Assembly (NCBI GenBank): GCA_977017575.1
Contig: CDRNVI010000040.1
Coordinates: 372,001 to 436,000, forward strand
DNA: 64,000 bases
Reading direction: 5' to 3'
From: Paramoeba atlantica
Taxonomy: Eukaryota > Protista > Discosea
The translations under genes and the position numbers were made by a program. Shown in pieces: positions 24,168 to 61,768 of the stretch (within the stretch, counting starts at the first letter, position 1; each line of letters opens with the position of its first letter). The notes under the pieces were generated by a model. The model made no database searches. It was not told the DNA's origin and saw only the letters and a program-made list of their open reading frames with translations.

Positions 24168-25145
24168 ATGAAGGAAAAAGGAATGACCGTTTCTTACGAA
24201 CTCAAAGGAATTCTTTCTGAGCATTGTAAGCGTATCCGCAAATATAAAAAGGCGCTTCGAAAACTACGAATAAAGCAGAAACATCTTGAAGAGAAGTGGA
24301 TTGAACAAGAGACTGAACTAACCTCACTTTTGAACAATACGAACTATGAGTCCGGGCACAAACGTTCTTTTGTGAGTGTGATCATAATCCTTGCTGACAT
24401 CAATCCTGATTCAGAAATATTAGATATTGTCACTAATTCGCAAAACGAATCAGATTCCGAGAAAGAATTATTTGCAAACGAACGTATTTCTGTGTCTTCA
24501 CGGTTTTCTGAAGAAATGAATGTGGGACAAGCAAGTAGGCCCATTTTAGACGAAGTTCCAATAATTTCTTCGCAATCAGATATCCATGAGAAAACTGTGT
24601 TGCACAAAAAGTCTCCAGCCATACTACCACGCACAACGTGGAACGTCGATCGTTCTACATTTCCTGGAAGAGCAAATTTGCTGGATCAGTCAGTTTTCGC
24701 ACCTACAGGAAAACAAAGTTTTTCGAGCCATACAACGAACCAAATAAGTACACCAACGAACCGCCCCGATGTATGTGCAGACATTCCAATCATATCCGTG
24801 TCGTCAAAAAAAGGGCATTGCGCTCAGAGAACCACACAAAACACTTGCCCCAGTGGAGAAAATGCAATGAAAAAATTAGTGAACGAGAAAAGGAGGAATG
24901 TTAGGTATCGGCCTGAGTTATTGCACGATCACCACAAAATGGTGCAACGTACAGAAAGCGTGACGCCTCAAGTTGAAGATTCACATGCGACCCGAATCAG
25001 CGCTGATCCGCATGAGGTCGATCAAACACAGCCTCCAATTCTTGTATCCGAAAGCAAGCAGGTTTTACCTACTGGTAATCCCAATATTCCATGTTCACCT
25101 CCGGAAATGTGGGATCTTCGGTTCTCAGTGCCGGATGTTTCATAG
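24168..25145 (+). CDS. Hypothetical protein, N-terminal coiled coil and disordered remainder
   Basis: 325-aa ATG-started ORF in the + strand array. Confidence 0.6.
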   Translation: MKEKGMTVSYELKGILSEHCKRIRKYKKALRKLRIKQKHLEEKWIEQETELTSLLNNTNYESGHKRSFVSVIIILADINPDSEILDIVTNSQNESDSEKELFANERISVSSRFSEEMNVGQASRPILDEVPIISSQSDIHEKTVLHKKSPAILPRTTWNVDRSTFPGRANLLDQSVFAPTGKQSFSSHTTNQISTPTNRPDVCADIPIISVSSKKGHCAQRTTQNTCPSGENAMKKLVNEKRRNVRYRPELLHDHHKMVQRTESVTPQVEDSHATRISADPHEVDQTQPPILVSESKQVLPTGNPNIPCSPPEMWDLRFSVPDVS

Positions 25146-25915
25146 CACAAAGCATGATCATGTGTTATTTGCAAGCTCCGGCATATCGAATGAGCAATAG
25201 ACCTCTTCCTAGTAATTCGGGGGGCGGTTTTGGTTCATGTAACTTAGAAGCACGCTGAGTAGCAATACATGTATTTACCGAATGTACCGCCTTGAAGATT
25301 GGGTGCCACGTTTTCATGCCACTTACTCAGGACAGAGCAAAAAACGTGGGTCAAAAGGGACTTTTTTCCCCAAAACTTTTAACTTATTCTATTTAATAAC
25401 TCTACCAAAGAAGAAAACGTATGAGCTTTACCTTGGTTCCGGTTCTGAGCCTGGAAAAAGATTTTAAATTCCTTAAACAGTGGATTGGAAGTCCCTAATT
25501 CACATCGCGCGGTACAAGCCTCTATCACCACGTCATCAAAGATTCCCAACTACAAAACGTGATGCGGTCACGTTATTTTACAGCCTATGCATACGTTATT
25601 TTACAGCTGTATTTTTTTACAGCCTATGCAAAGAAAAAAGATAGAGCGGAGTCGTGTGAGCAACAAAAATATGATGTTTAATCACTCGCTTAGGTAATAC
25701 AGAAATTGTGTCTGCGAAACTACCACGAAAAAAAATTATTTCTTGTTTTGGGAGGAAAAAGTCCCTTTTCACCAAAAAAGTCTCTTATAAAAAATCAAAA
25801 AAAGAGAGGTTGGTAGCGATCCCCCGCCGACTCAGACTAAGCGATAGTAATTACTGCGAACCCCCATTTACTTGTCATAGACCAACACCCCCTACTTAAT
25901 TGGGGAGGGGGGGCA

Positions 25916-26050
25916 CTCGATGAATATTCATCGAACGGACAGTGCGTTCGATGAATATTCATCGAACAGGACATCCTGTTCGATGAATGGATTGCAGTAC
26001 GACCCGTTCGATGAATCATTCATCGAACAGGATGTCCTGTTCGATGAATG
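25916..26050. repeat. Left array of the GTTCGATGAAT/ATTCATCGAAC palindromic half-site
   Basis: About 8 half-sites. Perfect 22-bp palindrome at 25946-25967. Confidence 0.95.
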
Positions 26051-26700
26051 AAAACGCAATTTTTTTTTGTAAAAAAAAAGCTCGTTTCGGTCTGCATCAT
26101 GCTCCTGGCTGCTACCTTGATCCGTAAGACAAAAACAAATCCGAAACGTTATCAAAAAGCGGAAGGATTCTTAAAACTATTGCCTCATAAGTTTACAAAG
26201 ATAAAATCATAACTTACAAATACACAAACCTCAGTGCGCGACCCAAAAAATATTGGGTTGGGGGTACGTTCGTTGTACTCAACGAACTGCCGGATTTTCG
26301 TTGAGTACTCAACGAACGGAAATTTACGGTGCAAGTCAAGGACTTTTGCATATGTCAAGGACTTTTGTGGAACACCTAAGAATTTTTTTTGAATTTCATT
26401 TTCCGTGCGTTCAGTATCCTACACTTCACTATATACGTTGACAACGCCTGCGTAGCGAAAACTACGAAATTCAGTGAGCTTCGCAAATTGCTTCCCACTA
26501 ACGACGCACAGGGGAATCCTACGCGGGGTACGGCTCAGGCCCGCTCACGCGGGCCCTCGCCGTTTCGCGGCCGCGCGCACCCCCGCTCACGCGGGGGCCC
26601 CCGCGCGGCCAAAATGGGTACTAAAATTTGTTATCAAGGTAGCTGGGCTTCGCAAATTGCTTCCCACGAATCTAGAGAGAAGCACACGTACAATAATCTT

Positions 26701-26733
26701 TAACGATAAAGATACAGTTTCTGTACCTTGTTG
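26701..26733 (+). other. Genomic spliced-leader (mini-exon)-like sequence not followed by an SL intron
   Basis: TAACGATAAAGATACAGTTTCTGTACCTTGTTG shares TAACG, the 16-mer GATACAGTTTCTGTAC and the terminal TTG with the kinetoplastid SL. It is followed by ATT, not a GT donor. Confidence 0.75.
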
Positions 26734-26756
26734 ATTATTTACTTTTTTTACCTTTC

Positions 26757-27056
26757 ATGGGAGTGTTCACACGCTCCAAAGCAAAAGAATCAGGAGTAGC
26801 TCCTGAGATTTTGCCGCTCCCTCGTGCCCGATGGAAAAAGAAGGCCGTGATGCCAACTCATCCGCCCGCCGTGCTAATATCCACCACCTCCGCATGGAGC
26901 GCGCGGGTCGCCAAAAAATATAATTATGTCCCAGGGCTACGCTCACAGTTGGGCCTTGCTCGCAAAGGGGGGCTTTTGCCTCCAGAAGCGGGCTACGCTC
27001 ACAGTTGGGCCTTGCTCGCAGACGGGGGCCTTGCTTGCACACTTGGGCTTCGCTGA
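26757..27056 (+). CDS. Orphan 99-aa ORF (possible retrocopy or element-encoded fragment) with internal 31-bp repeats
   Basis: ATG 23 nt after the SL-like sequence. GGGCTACGCTCACAGTTGGGCCTTGCTCGCA occurs at 26934-26964 and 26990-27020, with a partial third copy near 27051-27070. Confidence 0.35.
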   Translation: MGVFTRSKAKESGVAPEILPLPRARWKKKAVMPTHPPAVLISTTSAWSARVAKKYNYVPGLRSQLGLARKGGLLPPEAGYAHSWALLADGGLACTLGLR

Positions 27057-27149
27057 CAGTTGGGCCTTGCCTCCAGACATGTAAACGAGATGGTAATGTT
27101 CAAATTCCCCCCAAAAAAATCGAGACGAAAAATTCGTGCAGCAGTGCCC

Positions 27150-27284
27150 GTTGGATGAATGATTCATCGAACACACTGCCCGTTCGATGAATATTCATCG
27201 AACGGGACGCCTGGTCATCGAACGGGACGCCGTTCAATGAATATTCATCGAACGCACCGTGCGTTCGATGAATTTTCATCGAAT
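27150..27284. repeat. Right array of the same palindromic half-site, inverted relative to the left array
   Basis: About 9 half-sites. Perfect 28-bp palindrome at 27179-27206. Confidence 0.95.
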
Positions 27285-27446
27285 GCCCCCCCTGGCCACT
27301 TAATTGTCCCTTTGTCGAAAAAGTAGTAAAAAATGAGTGGATGTTCAGAGTATTTGAACATGTGTTTCTATAAAACGCACAAGATTTGGAAAATTTGAAC
27401 AAAATTTACTAGTTCAACAATTCTAATATGCAAACGTTTATTCTCT

Positions 27447-28061
27447 ATGTTGCGTGAATTCACTTCGTTAGAGAACGAATTCAGAGAGTCTATCAACAAA
27501 CTGCAAAAAGGTATTTGGAATTCAGAAATTTCATTGTCGTCTGTGAAAAACTCTTTCGATGGAATTCAATGCCTGGTCCAGGAAATGGCGGCAAAAATTG
27601 ACCAAGTTCCTCCTCAGTACAGTCATCTAAGACTTCGTTTTGAAAGTTACCTGCGAGAACTAAACACACTCGAACAAGAGTTCAAGAGAAAACGTGTATT
27701 GGATCCAAGCAGCGATTCGCGTACGTTGTCCTTGCTTGGGGAAACAAAAATCATGGTGCATGATACTATTCTAAAACAAAATTCAATTATATCAGAGAGT
27801 GAGCGGCTTATCGCTGACTCGGAGGAAATGGGGGGACAAATTTTACTTAATCTTGCTAAGCAGAAAGAATCTATGCGTAATGCGTCCGATGTAGCCCGAG
27901 ATTCATATCAACAGACAACTAGGGCTCGAAGACTTCTTACGCAGATGGGTAATGCTCTCCGAAATCGGAACGTTCTTATATTGGTGATCATGCTTATTCT
28001 CGTGTTAGTCATACTGATACTGCTTTATCTGAAGGTTTTAAAGCCACTAATACGATCTTAG
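27447..28061 (+). CDS. VTI1: Qb-SNARE, Vti1-like
   Basis: N-terminal helical bundle, SNARE motif SERLIADSEEMGGQILLNLAKQKESM, and C-terminal transmembrane anchor. Confidence 0.75.
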   Translation: MLREFTSLENEFRESINKLQKGIWNSEISLSSVKNSFDGIQCLVQEMAAKIDQVPPQYSHLRLRFESYLRELNTLEQEFKRKRVLDPSSDSRTLSLLGETKIMVHDTILKQNSIISESERLIADSEEMGGQILLNLAKQKESMRNASDVARDSYQQTTRARRLLTQMGNALRNRNVLILVIMLILVLVILILLYLKVLKPLIRS

Positions 28062-46397: not shown

Positions 46398-46734
46398 TGA
46401 GCAGAATTTCTTGCTTCATTATGTCGAATTGAAAGACACTATTTAAGAATAATGCAAGGGCGGTGCAGCTAAATCTGGGGGAGGTCTAAAATTTGTAAAT
46501 GTTGTTCAATTTTAGAAAATAATAGCGCATTCGAGAGCTCTCGCGAATCCCTCTGGTGGAAAGTGCGTCGTTTTCCACACCTTGCATAACGGGGATAAAA
46601 GGCCGAAAAAGTCAACTGCAAGCTTTTTTGCAAAGCCTACCTCAGAATAAGACCCTATGTTGGCGTACCTTTCCAGACGAAGCGCTCTACCACTGGTTTT
46701 GATCTGCTTAATGAATGGTAATGAGCCTTTAAAG

Positions 46735-49700
46735 CAGGGGTCCCTAAAACTTTGTAAACCCCCCACAGCGAAAAGTCACCCCCCTCTAACTTTTCAGCCA
46801 AGTGTCCGTTTGAGCTCATTCTTGTTGCATTTTGATGTTCCCAACATACTTTGCGCATTATAGCATGGAACCAAGGCTCTCAAATGCGTGCATCCGATAG
46901 ATGGATTATCACTTTCTTCACATTTTTCAAGAGACCAATTTCTCACACTTTAACAAAATAAATCTTCTCTTCCCATGAGAAATTCAATTATTTTTGTCCA
47001 TTTTTGCTGATTTTTGTTGCGAACGAGAGATCTCGTTCTCCTAGCAAAGATCTTTGCCGCTATTTTTTAATATTGACCCACTTGTGCCCCCTGGCCGCGG
47101 AGTGTTTGTTTTCTTAAATTAGTGTGGTATGACGATGCAAAAAAATAGATCCTAAAAGCAATTTTCTTTTTCATTTTCTAAAATGATCTAAAAATGGTGG
47201 GAACGTGTAGATCTCAGAATTTTGAACGAGAAAATGATATTTTAACCCCCTTAGGCCCCTTCAAGCAAAAAGTAAAGGAGACAGCTTAAAAACGTTGATT
47301 TATCACCGTTTCAAGAAAGCACCAATCAAATACAAATATTCCACCACGTGACAAATTGAATGTTTGTTATCTGTTTTTGATCATTTTTGTTGCAATCGAG
47401 AGATCTCGATCCCCTAGCGAAGATCTGTGACACCATTTTCATGTTGACCCCCTTCTCCCCCCCTGGTCGAGGAACATGAGATTTTTCGGGTAATATTGGC
47501 ATGACTATGTAAAAACGTCATTAAAAAAATGAGTTTAAATTTCTTATCTGTGAAGAGGTCTAAAAACAGCGGGAACGTGCAGATCTCAAAATTTTGAACG
47601 AAAAAGTTGTGCCGCAACCCCCCTAAGCCTCGTTGTACAAAAAAAAGAGGGGGGTGACTTATTCGCTGTGGGCGGTTTATATATAGTTTATAGTATTTCA
47701 AAAAAAAATTATAGTACTATAAATGACATTTATAGTACTATAAATACTTTAAAGTGTTTGAAAAACTTTATTTATTTTCCTACTCTTCTCCCCCCGTGTA
47801 TAAATGCGGTGATTATGACAAGTACACATTAAGCACTTGCGCTTCTGTCTAGCATGCGTTTGACAATACGTTATAAAAAAAATAGCGCGCAATAAAAAGT
47901 GGAAAGAAATCAAAACATGTAAATATACATACAATGCATATTTAACAATGGGAAAAAACAAGGCGAATGGGAAGAACCGGCGGAAAAAACCCACGTATGT
48001 ATCGTTTAAAAAAGCCCATGATGAATCGTATCTTCCAATCCAATAACATCTTTCGAATTCAACATAAGATCATTCCTGATACGAAACAACGGTGAAATTG
48101 CCATAAATGGATGCGACTACCAGAGAAACCTGCCGCGAATTGGAAGATCGACTTTCTGTGCATTTTATTTCCTTTAATTGATTGTTGCCGTAGCGAACAA
48201 CTCTGGCATTGTAATATGTCGTGCCGTTATGACGTACACAAAATGGGCGATTTGTCAAGGCCATGTGGGCGCACATGTCTCCTGCGTCGTAGAGTGATTC
48301 GATCTGTTCAACTTCGCTTGAGGACATACAATCGTTTAATAAAAGAGAAAAGAACGGGCAGCCAGTATTATCCCCAGTTTCACCGGTTTCGACTTTCGAT
48401 ATACCGATCGTAGGTTTAACCCGACATCGTATGGCTGATTCTGCTTCAACCAAGTCTTGCTTCAGGCGAGCCCGCAGATCACTATGGATAAAAGACGTCG
48501 AACTGAAAACTCGTTCACACGCAGCTTCAGAGGCGGATGCTACAGCAACCTTTTGAGCAGCATGTGCCAGGTGAGGCACTTTGTCCACAACAACAGAGTC
48601 CCCCCAAAATCCGGCGAAAGCACTTTTTCCTTGAGCACTGCGAACCATAGCACGTTCATCCAATAAACAACTATCCAAGAACCAACTATTAAATTCGGAC
48701 CAAATACTACTGTGCGTCACACTTGGCATATCGGAACTGAGCGAGAGAACGAGTGGCACACAAGTCTCACGAAGACGTTTTTTAATCGAAGTAGATATTG
48801 TCCCCCACTTCACTGCAGGCGACAGAACTCCGCAAAGGAAATGCGCGGACGACATCACGCGAATAAGACGATCATTCAAGTGAACTTTGTGACCTTCTTC
48901 TGCTTTGGCTGTGAGAGCTAACCATAGTCGGAGCGCAGCGCTAATAGTACAGTCGTTTCTTTCTAACAGCCGACCCACGACCTGGTACATTTCAAACCGT
49001 TTGACCCACTCCTGCAAGATACTTTTTTGGGTGTAATCATTCCAGTTGGAACATTTTATTGCTTGCTGCACTTCATTTAGCGAGGACCACCACCTAGTGG
49101 GTACTGGAGCTCGAAACGTAAGACAACGAGAAGCTAATTCGAGGATATCATCTTTTTTTTCTAGAGTCAAGACTTGCTCCATTACCAATTGCAATGCGTG
49201 AGCCGCGCATATGCTCCCAATCATGTTGCCTGCTTTCGTAAACTCCCGCACGGCTTTTTTGATCGCAGAACCAGCGTCGGATACGATGTGCACCACAGTA
49301 ACATGCATTTGCTTCAGCTCGGACACTACGGTACCAAGGAGCGCGTTATATGCACTTGCAGTACAGCCATCAACCATTTCTACTACGTTCCATGTAAAAG
49401 CCTGCCCATCGTGCAAAATGCATATGGCAGACGTAGTTCTTCCATGAATCGTACCCGAGTCCATAGCCATGCTAACAAAACTGCCACACACGTGAGCACA
49501 GATTTCCAACCGCAACTTATCCTTCAGATCAATGAGTAAGTTGTTAATCGTACTTTCCCCAGGGACGCAGCGCAGTCCCTTTGTAAGAAGCCACTTAAGG
49601 TTTGGGTCTTGCAAAGCAGCATTGCTAACCCCATGATCGCTTTTCCAAAGGAGGAGTCGCTCAAATTCCTGTAATTGTGGTCTCAGGGTGAAGGCATCCA

Positions 49701-50077
49701 AAGATCCTTGTTCCACACGTTTTTGGCGCTGAGTGCTTTGTAACCACTCCTCAAAATTTAGGTTATGACTTTTTTTCAAGTGCGTGAGTGCCGAAGAGTA
49801 GGAGACATGAATCCCCTTTTCGCAAAAAAAGGTTCTTTTCGCGCCTACTTCGCAGACTTGGCATTCGAAATTGTTCGTATCACCAATTTTAACAAAGTGT
49901 GAAGCAACAAATTCCGCCTGGCTTTCGTCGTTCCGTCGCTTATTTGGCATTTCTGAGAACAAAAAAAATAAGGTTTTATATACAGGTTTTGTACATAAGG
50001 TTTTGTATATAGTATTTAAAAGTTTATAGTACTATAAAAGTACTATAATTAAGTTTTTAAAGTTTTAGGGACCCCTG
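46735..50077 (-). mobile_element. Full-length hAT DNA transposon
   Basis: 19-bp perfect TIR CAGGGGTCCCTAAAACTTT at 46735-46753 and 50059-50077. 8-bp flanks CTTTAAAG (46727-46734) and CTTTTAAG (50078-50085). Encloses an intact transposase. Confidence 0.93.
48070..49950 (-). CDS. hAT transposase (BED zinc finger, DDE catalytic core, dimerisation domain)
   Basis: CQVC...HLKKSH BED finger, MAMDSGT, VSDAGS, CAAH, TRWWSS and SEAACERVFS. ATG at 49950 (ORF track starts at TTG 49962). Confidence 0.92.
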   Translation of the reverse strand: MPNKRRNDESQAEFVASHFVKIGDTNNFECQVCEVGAKRTFFCEKGIHVSYSSALTHLKKSHNLNFEEWLQSTQRQKRVEQGSLDAFTLRPQLQEFERLLLWKSDHGVSNAALQDPNLKWLLTKGLRCVPGESTINNLLIDLKDKLRLEICAHVCGSFVSMAMDSGTIHGRTTSAICILHDGQAFTWNVVEMVDGCTASAYNALLGTVVSELKQMHVTVVHIVSDAGSAIKKAVREFTKAGNMIGSICAAHALQLVMEQVLTLEKKDDILELASRCLTFRAPVPTRWWSSLNEVQQAIKCSNWNDYTQKSILQEWVKRFEMYQVVGRLLERNDCTISAALRLWLALTAKAEEGHKVHLNDRLIRVMSSAHFLCGVLSPAVKWGTISTSIKKRLRETCVPLVLSLSSDMPSVTHSSIWSEFNSWFLDSCLLDERAMVRSAQGKSAFAGFWGDSVVVDKVPHLAHAAQKVAVASASEAACERVFSSTSFIHSDLRARLKQDLVEAESAIRCRVKPTIGISKVETGETGDNTGCPFFSLLLNDCMSSSEVEQIESLYDAGDMCAHMALTNRPFCVRHNGTTYYNARVVRYGNNQLKEIKCTESRSSNSRQVSLVVASIYGNFTVVSYQE

Positions 50078-50989
50078 CTTTTAAGAAACTTCCTGGTGAA
50101 TGCACTCATCTTTCATTCACGGATAATGAAAAAACGTAAAATAACATGCCAAAATTACAAAAATAATGCAACAAAGGCCTTTTTCAAGCTCTTTTTTCGT
50201 ATTTTCGCCTTAAAAAAAAATAAAACTCAAAACGGCTGGAAACGACGTATTTTCCACCACAGGGGTTCGAGGGAGCTCCCGAATGCGCTATTATTTTCTA
50301 AAATTGGCTAAGTTCTACGAATTTTAGACCCCCCCAGATTTAGCTGCATCCCCTGTATACAGTGGTTTCAAGATATCTTTCCCCTCGCGGAATTTTGAGT
50401 TTTTTTATCGATTTTTTTCTCATTTTTGCAGCAGTGGATAGATCTCATTTCCCTGGTGAAGAGCTTTGCTGTCCTTTTTTTGTAGGAACCCCCTGGGTCT
50501 AAAACACGTGGTTTTGTGGGGTCATTTTTATGGAACATATCCATTCTTTTCTCCATTCTTTATGTTTTTTTATGCTTTGTCAAAATATTTTCTCTCGCAT
50601 TATGGCTTGTTTTCATTGTGCTTTCATTGTGTGTAGATCTCGTTCCTCTAGCAAGGCCTTTGCTATTTTCTCTTACTAGTGATCCCCTAGTGCTCTCGTG
50701 AGATAAAAAACTTGATTACAACCACAAATCCCTTATGGAGATCATAAAAAAAGTTTTAAGACCTTAAAAAGATCCTCTCATAAACAAAAGGCTATGAACT
50801 CAATTACAGTGAAGTATTCAAAAAAGGGGGGCCACCGCCAATGCGGCACTATTCTGCCGATCGCAGTGATTTCGTCCATTGGAGGCGTAGTTAATTTCGG
50901 AACCGGCCCCACGCCGCGAAGCGGCACGCTTTTTTTGTGTAAAAAGCTTTTTGTGCTCTGGTGGTTAAATAGCAACGGTTACTAGCGGC

Positions 50990-61494: not shown

Positions 61495-61655
61495 ATGATC
61501 ACAATTGTCATTTCAGGCACCCCTACCCTTCACAAAAAATAAAGTTACAGGTAATGTCGGTGTGGTAGCTGCTTCGTAAAAAAGCGGTGGTTGTTGGTAA
61601 ACCGGCTTCGCAAATGGCTTCCCACTAACGGCGTCGCGTATGGCTGAAAATATAA

Positions 61656-61722
61656 CTGCCGGGAGTCGAACCTGTGACCACCTGATTATGAACGGCAGGT
61701 CTTAACAACTGGACTACCTGGG
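61656..61722 (-). pseudogene. Degenerate tRNA-like sequence (Met CAT-like anticodon loop)
   Basis: The reverse strand reads CCCAGGTAGTCCAGTTGTTAAGACCTGCCGTTCATAATCAGGTGGTCACAGGTTCGACTCCCGGCAG: A-box-like D arm, TTCATAA loop, GGTTCGACTCC B box. Acceptor and T stems do not pair properly. Confidence 0.55.
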
Positions 61723-61768
61723 TTCGAGTCCCCGGGACCTACAACCGGGACCTACGTTTTTAGGCACC

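Follow-up and report, generated by a model that had tools for sequence, protein, structure and literature searches.

Introduction

The locus described here lies in a 64,000-nt stretch of contig CDRNVI010000040.1 (hereafter the window) and consists of a spliced leader (SL)-like sequence placed directly in front of a short open reading frame (ORF), inside a mobile element. The described systems that come closest to it include SLACS, CZAR and CRE1-2 of trypanosomatids and NeSL-1 of C. elegans, which are SL-gene-associated non-long-terminal-repeat (non-LTR) retrotransposons with a restriction-like endonuclease that sit within the exon of SL RNA genes and take partial SL sequence from this target site. 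The trypanosomatid CRE/SLACS/CZAR members reside within SL RNA genes, whose promoter drives their transcription, and SLACS, CZAR and CRE insertions are located inside the SL exon, between nt 11 and 12. Our locus resembles these elements in having SL sequence at the 5′ end and an R2-group reverse transcriptase (RT) in the homologous full element. In contrast to them, however, a nearly complete SL travels here with dispersed copies that have unrelated flanks, and site specificity for SL genes was not seen among the SL-headed copies, which are flanked by the interior of a DNA transposon (segment U, see below), by poly(A) or by unique sequence.

Relict SLs have been described in retrogenes of dinoflagellates and Perkinsus, where they are taken as proof that a processed, trans-spliced mRNA was reverse-transcribed and re-integrated (PMC5585692, PMC2868825, PMC3229502). 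Our locus resembles them in that a DNA-encoded SL stands at the exact trans-splice junction before a mature 5′ untranslated region (5′UTR) and lacks a donor site. The present case differs in that the host is a kinetoplastid-type euglenozoan, the copied RNA came from a retrotransposon, and the relic is a fragment that lacks its own poly(A) and that a DNA transposon has since relocated. A third parallel is Pr77, a short 5′-terminal module that is common to the trypanosomatid ingi/L1Tc retroposon families (PMC1874656, PMC8190864). Our locus likewise involves a short 5′ module common to different retroposon families; whereas Pr77 is an internal promoter of unspliced transcripts, the common 5′ end here is the SL itself. 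In the literature searched (most subscription journals lie outside it) we found no description of SL relics in Euglenozoa, nor of the present leader sequence, and such relics seem to be undescribed for this group.

Below, we argue that positions 26698-26894 of the window are a reverse-transcription relic of a trans-spliced retrotransposon mRNA that is now cargo inside a non-autonomous terminal inverted repeat (TIR) transposon, a reading to which we assign a probability of roughly 80%.

Results

A DNA copy of the spliced leader

The first-pass annotation of the window had pointed to a leader-like sequence (TAACGATAAAGATACAGTTTCTGTACCTTGTTG) at 26701-26733, followed by a 23-nt spacer (ATTATTTAC...) and by the ATG, at 26757, of a 99-aa ORF, and all of these are indeed present (the ORF spans 26757-27056, with its stop codon at 27054-27056). 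The match to a leader is in fact longer than had been noted, covering the 36 nt of 26698-26733 (CTTTAACG...TTG). It occurs once in the window and was never matched in 100 window shuffles, even with 3 mismatches allowed, so that the significance claimed for it was upheld. After this sequence the window reads ATTATTT, and neither a GT donor nor the GTATGAG... intron start follows the leader in the window or in any of the 8 copies, all of which continue with ATTATTTAC.

Scanning public metagenome contigs for the 23-nt 3′ part of the leader yielded a sole contig, L005, with an SL RNA gene that reads ...gtagtAACTTTAACGATAAAGATACAGTTTCTGTACCTTGTTG|GTATGAGAAGCTTCG and whose exon is followed by GTATGAGAAGC. 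Window positions 26698-26733 correspond to positions 3-38 of this SL exon with an identity of 36/36. In addition, we compared 5.9 kb around the locus with the contigs of X5, a small RNA-type run of the same organism that is labelled 'RNA?'. These contigs meet the compared sequence almost only at 26696/26701/26707-26733/26736/26740, at a depth of 1180-1448, and past 26733, 26736 or 26740 they run into many different unrelated sequences; in one 884-nt contig the leader match is found at contig positions 4-33. Given the L005 exon identity and X5 contigs that resemble a leader common to many mRNAs, the leader is the spliced leader of this organism, and the leader-like sequence is a DNA copy of that true SL.

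An SL start at 26696, as given by one RNA contig, was rejected as a snap-back artefact: the first 20 nt and ATC of this contig are the exact reverse complement of the SL 3′ part, and the contig is informative from TTTAACG onward. The relic itself possibly starts 1-2 nt before 26698, and the preceding AAT is common to segment U. One X4 contig has poly(A) directly before 26695.

A probable fragment of an SL-headed retrotransposon

The fragment that begins with the SL relic is 197 nt long (26698-26894) and comprises SL positions 3-38, a 23-nt UTR and 46 codons:

26698..26733, + strand: spliced-leader relic (SL positions 3-38, exact), from the L005 exon identity, the X5 RNA contigs and the missing GT donor
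26734..26756, + strand: pyrimidine-rich retrotransposon 5′UTR, 23 nt (ATTATTTACTTTTTTTACCTTTC), aligning with the UTRs at L012(-)8735 and L012(-)2685
26757..26894, + strand: retrotransposon ORF1 start, 46 codons (MGVFTRSKAKESGVAPEILPLPRARWKKK...), truncated at 26894, from BLASTP to the L008/L012 ORF

Its best relative was found on L008 and its extension L012, where the minus strand carries an SL relic at 8775-8736 (AATACTAACGATAAAG...CCTTGTTG), then a pyrimidine-rich UTR and an ORF beginning MGMFTRSRAKDTGVAPVVQPLPTTRRRKK. The first 29 aa of the window ORF are identical to this ORF at 18/29 positions (62%, E 4e-12, BLASTP), and the nucleotide alignment of the two loci is continuous from SL through UTR into ORF. 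Past a frameshift and a proline-rich stretch, the L012 ORF enters a reverse transcriptase (RVT_1 domain), of which more intact relatives exist in P0023-P0027 (57-61% identity). A profile of this RT family (A5) matched the R2 retrotransposon proteins 9nl3 and 9dou at E values of 1.6e-33 to ~2e-33 and LINE-1 ORF2 at 5e-16, a result that concerns the relatives only, as the window fragment contains no RT. A phmmer search of PDB with P0026 gave no match. By eye, the C-termini of P0026 and P0027 hold a CCHC/endonuclease-like motif (CPGC...H...C). A second element, at L012(-)2725-1604, consists of a relic (ATCTTTAACG...), a similar UTR and an ORF1 that begins with MVLTRSKAKQ and has an LsmAD domain; the N-terminal motif V[FL]TRSKAK is common to the window ORF and this ORF1 (L012:1604-2656(-)). 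Judged by this homology, the SL fragment appears to be the 5′-terminal part of an SL-headed, R2/CRE-like retrotransposon.

The R2-like nature of the RT family also speaks for another origin of the leader, namely the insertion of an ancestral R2/CRE-like element into an SL RNA gene, with later transcription from the promoter of that gene, so that the SL exon became part of the element's own RNA. The endonuclease-like C-terminal motif of P0026 and P0027 can be compared with the CRE/SLACS/CZAR group, which moreover offers a trypanosomatid precedent. The junction at our locus, however, lies exactly at the exon 3′ end, which is the trans-splice junction, rather than at the site within the exon where SLACS, CZAR and CRE insert, and the relics are preceded by unrelated flanks or poly(A) instead of SL gene upstream sequence. 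We therefore consider such an insertion origin unlikely; the SL was probably added through trans-splicing and not through co-transcription with an SL gene.

A third explanation for the leader is that of a degenerate or variant SL RNA gene, in which promoter, exon and an intron with a mutated donor were mobilised as a unit; a conventional SL RNA gene with a non-canonical donor had been named by the first-pass annotation itself as one outcome that would overturn its proposal. The fold of 26695-26840 has a z of -3.5 versus shuffles and includes two hairpins and GAUUUUGC, which loosely recalls an Sm site, and a solo copy of the locus on L004 (see below) has the same 240 nt upstream of the SL. On the other hand, the sequence downstream of the leader is homologous to retrotransposon UTR and ORF and not to the L005 intron (GTATGAGAAGC), the second hairpin is broken in the L007 copy, and what precedes the leader belongs to the interior of TIR elements and occurs in SL-less form as well. 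Rfam scans (the whole window at gathering score, and 25800-27400 at E <= 10) returned no SL RNA or other relevant family and only hairpin look-alikes on the TIR palindromes. Altogether, an SL gene origin of this kind is the least credible of the alternatives that we weighed.

The 99-aa ORF is not a gene

The ORF behind the leader had been called an orphan, a label that does not hold. While its 5′ part is homologous to the ORF of the SL-headed RT element, the remainder is read-through into an unrelated repeat (repeat X), which supplies codons 47-99 and the stop. The 99-aa ORF is thus a chance fusion between a retrotransposon ORF1 start and an open frame in repeat X. Pfam found no domain in it, and phmmer against 1.8 billion cluster representatives returned its own cluster, four repeat translations (P0002-P0004, P0007) and three other, unrelated repeat proteins. 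P0002 and P0004 were traced to the same assembly, and the database matches to ORF residues 44-94 are translations of repeat X. Moreover, the L007 copy lacks 1 nt at 26800 and has a 3-nt insertion as well as 15 differences within 26778-26966, so that its frame is broken. The chimeric make-up, the missing Pfam match, the repeat-only phmmer matches and the L007 frameshift together indicate that the ORF is not a gene. The SL core is not invariant either, with a C>T change in the L001 copy.

The proposal that a reverse-transcribed, trans-spliced RNA had been captured at this locus thus stands in its core, with the true SL joined at its exon 3′ end to a 5′UTR and no donor in between, and is corrected in its specifics. 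The source RNA, probably trans-spliced, was that of a retrotransposon (SL, UTR and the first 29 codons being homologous) and not of a cellular gene. The capture was indeed of a retro-copy, but only a 197-nt 5′ fragment of it survives, and on L007 the family-B copy carries a frameshift in the ORF.

SL relics head several retroelements

The locus is also less of a single oddity than it first seemed. Within 31 kb of L012 and L014 we found four more SL relics, at L012(-)3350, L012(-)2708, L012(+)20316 and L014(+)10188, each followed by a UTR and an ORF. At L012(-)3350 and L012(-)2708 the poly(A) of the element before runs straight into the relic, and the relic at L012(-)3350 heads a retroposon of ~640 nt from SL to poly(A). 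The relic at L012(+)20316 heads a 1001-aa RT ORF, and at L014(+)10188 a partial SL duplication of 10 nt, CTTTAACGAT, stands between poly(A) and the full AACTTTAACG... leader. On the basis of L012 and L014, SL relics at the head of retroelements fit a genome-wide habit.

In all relics the leader is intact from approximately position 7 to position 38 and ends exactly at TTG, whereas the first 2-6 nt vary (AAC, ATC, TTC, AATAC, TTAACAA). This variable range includes the four cap-4 positions, and misreading or premature stops of the RT at the cap-4 nucleotides may explain the 5′ variation.

Some further observations concern the surroundings of these relics. L012:2686-3372 (minus strand) and L014:10145-10210 are chains of retroposons in which an SL relic abuts the preceding poly(A), and unrelated ORFs have the same UTR start (AATTATTT) behind the leader. 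At L007:1720-1838, a family-B element (see below) holds a second SL-like 38-mer, of which the 3′ 23 nt are identical to the SL, in contrast to a divergent 5′ half (AACATATGATCTACA...). Behind it come GTACATTTTCCC, with a GT, and a hairpin of 15 perfectly paired bp (CCGGCAACGGGCATA...TATGCCCGTTGCCGG), and the whole may represent a variant SL-RNA-like unit or else a chimera. At L011:3690-3800, an SL relic with a 1-nt insertion has the same 30-nt GTTGTTATTTTGTTACGTTTAAAGTTTTGT on either side and is followed by ATGAGATCCC, whereby GTATGAGA, a canonical intron start, is recreated after the repeat. This may be a rearranged SL gene, or a relic adjoining its own unspliced acceptor.

The carrier is a non-autonomous TIR element

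The first-pass annotation had placed the leader inside a mobile-like element, and this element could be delimited as follows, together with the parts of its interior that surround the SL fragment:

25902..27297, + strand: family-A non-autonomous TIR element, 1,396 bp, hAT-like, from its 72-nt inverted arms, target-site duplications and copies
25894..25901, no strand: left 8-bp target-site duplication (ACTTAATT), identical to 27298-27305
27298..27305, no strand: right 8-bp target-site duplication (ACTTAATT), matching the left copy
26214..26253, + strand: repeat X fragment (5′ part, hairpin collapsed), matching the X units at L004:181-243 and 996-1075
26254..26697, + strand: segment U, ordinary TIR-element interior, occurring without SL in L008, L009 and L011
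26895..27100, + strand: 3′ part of repeat X with the right hairpin arm (TGGAGCGCGCGGGTCGCC), an A-run and 55-nt tandem repeats (26913-27078), from direct-repeat family D2

The termini of family A read GGGGAGGGGGGGCAC... and ...GCCCCCCCTGGCC, and the 72-nt inverted arms are 89% complementary and built from nested 20-nt palindromes (TTCGATGAATATTCATCGAA). Contigs of both X1 and X2 join 25893 to 27298 at single-copy depth, with 9 shared letters and 1404 nt skipped. Since this empty site skips exactly the element plus one target-site duplication (TSD), the insertion is polymorphic and recent.

Four contigs from a single ENA assembly came up through their identical 99-aa ORF, and L010 emerged from a later search. 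The whole family-A element is present at 97-98% identity in L001, L002, L004 and L010, while the L003 copy is 5′-truncated. Perfect and mutually different 8-bp TSDs (ACTTAATT, AAACTTTT, ATCTGATA and GTTAAATG) flank four family-A copies (window, L001, L002 and L004). The L010 copy has both family-A termini and the same SL junction, but no TSD was found at it. In X1 the element has a depth of ~9-12x single-copy, which suggests ~9-12 element copies. A sister family, B, occurs in L007 and, in the form of a deletion derivative, in L006. Its palindrome is TTCGATGAGTACTCATCGAA, its terminal inverted-repeat motif TAGGGGGGACC and its TSD GATTACAT.

According to the ORF list of the window, the 1,396-bp element has no transposase ORF. 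An autonomous hAT element is located at window 46727-50085, with a 630-aa ORF (DUF659 and the hAT dimerisation domain Dimer_Tnp_hAT) and TIRs CAGGGGTCCCTAAAACTTT. When YARNG-type ends were examined, the family-A ends proved to be GGGGAGGGG / GGCCAGGGG and the family-B inverted-repeat motif, which lies a few nt inside the element ends, to begin with TAGGGGGG. The autonomous hAT of the window differs from both in having CAGGGGTCCC at its ends, and no matching partner transposase was identified for the 1.4-kb element. At L011:4855-5360 (minus strand), ORFs show a weak match to DDE_Tnp_IS1595 (Merlin-type), a superfamily that makes 8-9-bp duplications too and is a possible alternative partner for the TIR families. 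We thus regard the carrier as a hAT-like, recently mobile, non-autonomous DNA transposon, although it could also belong to another superfamily with 8-9-bp TSDs.

The carrier resembles non-autonomous hAT-type and miniature inverted-repeat transposable element (MITE)-like elements in its long TIRs, 8-bp TSDs, lack of a transposase, patchwork interior, near-identical copies and presence/absence polymorphism, and like these elements, which carry captured host or repeat fragments, it has taken up cargo. DNA transposons are not known from trypanosomatid genomes that have been studied well, and in the lineage of the present organism they are usually regarded as absent.

Segment U and repeat X occur independently of the SL

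Upstream of the SL, segment U contains a TIR-like palindrome (26267-26318) and GCTTCGCAAATTGCTTCCCAC twice, at 26478 and 26647. SL-less versions of U were found at L008:2438-2828, at L009:60-453 and, in L011, at 1893-2171 and 2512-2639. In L009, ...GTAGAATAAT runs into TGCATGATT exactly where the window goes on with CTTTAACG. Because U continues differently in L009 at this very point, the SL begins at a true breakpoint. In X2, the unitig 26478-26642, which is part of U, has a depth of ~96x single-copy. A promoter role for U at SL genes was rejected, as its likeness to the X4/X5 loose end GCGAAATTGCACTTAGAGGCATGTACACGG|TAACG reached p ~0.1 in local alignment versus random windows.

As observations on U by itself, the depth of 26478-26642 is approximately four to five times that of the other parts of the TIR element, and contigs show ~100-nt tandem variants of 26478-26561 with C-rich linkers. 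Elsewhere in the window, at 61604-61760, a 29-nt match to the U motif GGCTTCGCAAATGGCTTCCCACTAACGGCG adjoins the tRNA-like arm sequences GGTTCGAGTCCCCGG and GGGAGTCGAACCTGTGACC; ARAGORN called no tRNA on the window (including 61604-61760), L004, L005 or L007.

Repeat X, which borders U on its left and the SL fragment on its right, has a depth of ~170x single-copy. SL-less X units homologous to 26895-27100 occur at L004:244-380, and X stands alone in L004:181-380. At the left X fragment, other genomic copies go on after 26231 with GCGGAAGTGGCAGA, as seen in contig loose ends. The X unit of ~200 nt is composed of a perfect 13-bp GC hairpin (GCGACCCGCGCGC-TGGA-GCGCGCGGGTCGC) and 55-nt sub-repeats and is found in tandem at L004:181-1075, and loose ends show that some genomic X copies have an A-rich tail past 26957, where they end.

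Window positions 26460-27078 also recur as a solo copy outside any TIR element, at L004:429-995, where two TGGAG flank it within the loop of an X-unit hairpin. The idea that the SL, the next 161 nt and X form a complete short interspersed element (SINE) was rejected, as this solo copy also has 240 nt of U before the SL.

Genomic setting

The locus is intergenic: an ORF at 24168-25145 precedes it and a SNARE-like gene (27447-28061) follows. The insertion point of this copy is located 142 nt upstream of the SNARE-like gene, within a + strand gene cluster. Of at least 250 aa there are 22 other ORFs in the window, all on the + strand except the hAT transposase and one overlapping ORF. This layout is that of a kinetoplastid-type polycistronic unit, and the host genome is that of a kinetoplastid-type euglenozoan.

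Discussion

The observations that bear directly on the origin of the SL fragment are its identity with the true SL, the homology of its UTR and ORF start to an SL-headed RT element, the independent occurrence of U and X, the TSDs, the empty site and the further copies. A plausible course of events is that a retrotransposon mRNA was trans-spliced like any mRNA of a polycistronic unit, and that the element's own reverse transcriptase then copied the mature RNA, which would leave the leader in DNA but neither donor nor intron. Such a copy, whole or reduced to its 5′ part, would next have been placed beside U and X in the TIR element or in DNA that later became one, the order of these rearrangements in the TIR interior being conjectural. 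A transposase encoded elsewhere could subsequently have spread the TIR element to ~10-20 sites, with the SL relic as passive cargo.

Several points weigh against this reading. The best retrotransposon relative is only 62% identical over 29 aa, and no close (>80%) full-length source was found. The fragment has neither a poly(A) nor a TSD of its own, and its end at 26894 abuts repeat X without an A-run, so that the retro-origin rests on the homology and the SL junction. A 3′-truncated non-LTR fragment is moreover atypical, 5′ truncation being the rule, and a later deletion or recombination must be assumed. Finally, 26451-26777 (the end of U, the SL and the UTR) differs at only 4/327 positions between families A and B, as opposed to ~8% in the flanks, which could reflect gene conversion or hint at constraint.

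This far better conservation of 26451-26777 also speaks for a functional genomic SL. The first-pass annotation had suggested such mimicry, a pre-installed SL that could yield SL-bearing transcripts without trans-splicing, as a candidate undescribed system. The genomic SL, perhaps with the conserved end of U as promoter, would then let the element or the retrotransposon family produce RNAs that begin with an SL and need no trans-splicing to be translated. In favour of this, several different SL-headed elements have the UTR start A(A)TTATTT in common, which recalls the common 5′ module Pr77 (PMC1874656), and a cDNA copy loses the original acceptor site, which bears on how daughter copies are expressed. 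Yet 26741-27054 is without any RNA contig cover, although X5 is small and labelled 'RNA?', so that the absence of transcripts is weak evidence. The L001 copy has its substitution in the SL core, the 5′-most 2-3 nt (the cap-4 positions) are not constant among relics, and a T7 run follows 10 nt past the SL. In addition, the sequence upstream of the SL exists elsewhere without it, the likeness of U to another SL-flanking sequence is not significant, and the ORF behind the SL is truncated here and frameshifted in L007. Mimicry is therefore a very doubtful explanation, and the SL relic at this locus is probably non-functional.

Equally far-fetched, in our estimation, is a broader version in which the hard-coded SL and the A(A)TTATTT-type UTR form a working 5′ module of several retrotransposon families and of the TIR elements with 26451-26777. 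If it were true, this module would give leader-bearing RNA that is translatable or competent for retrotransposition without fresh trans-splicing, and would thereby solve the problem of the lost acceptor.

Under the reading that we favour, a reverse-transcription relic carried as cargo, the locus is a fossil fragment in an active non-autonomous DNA transposon and not a new expression system. It constitutes a clean, datable case of a mature trans-spliced RNA that was copied back into kinetoplastid-type DNA, and shows SL relics being shuffled onward by a second class of mobile DNA, cut-and-paste TIR elements that are still polymorphic between isolates. Polymorphic DNA transposons are in themselves unusual in kinetoplastid-type genomes. 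For annotation the locus holds a warning, in that an ATG preceded by an SL in genomic DNA cannot be taken as evidence of a gene. SL relics could in turn serve to date retrotransposition and to reveal how the reverse transcriptase behaves at the 5′ end of its template, at the cap-4 nucleotides.

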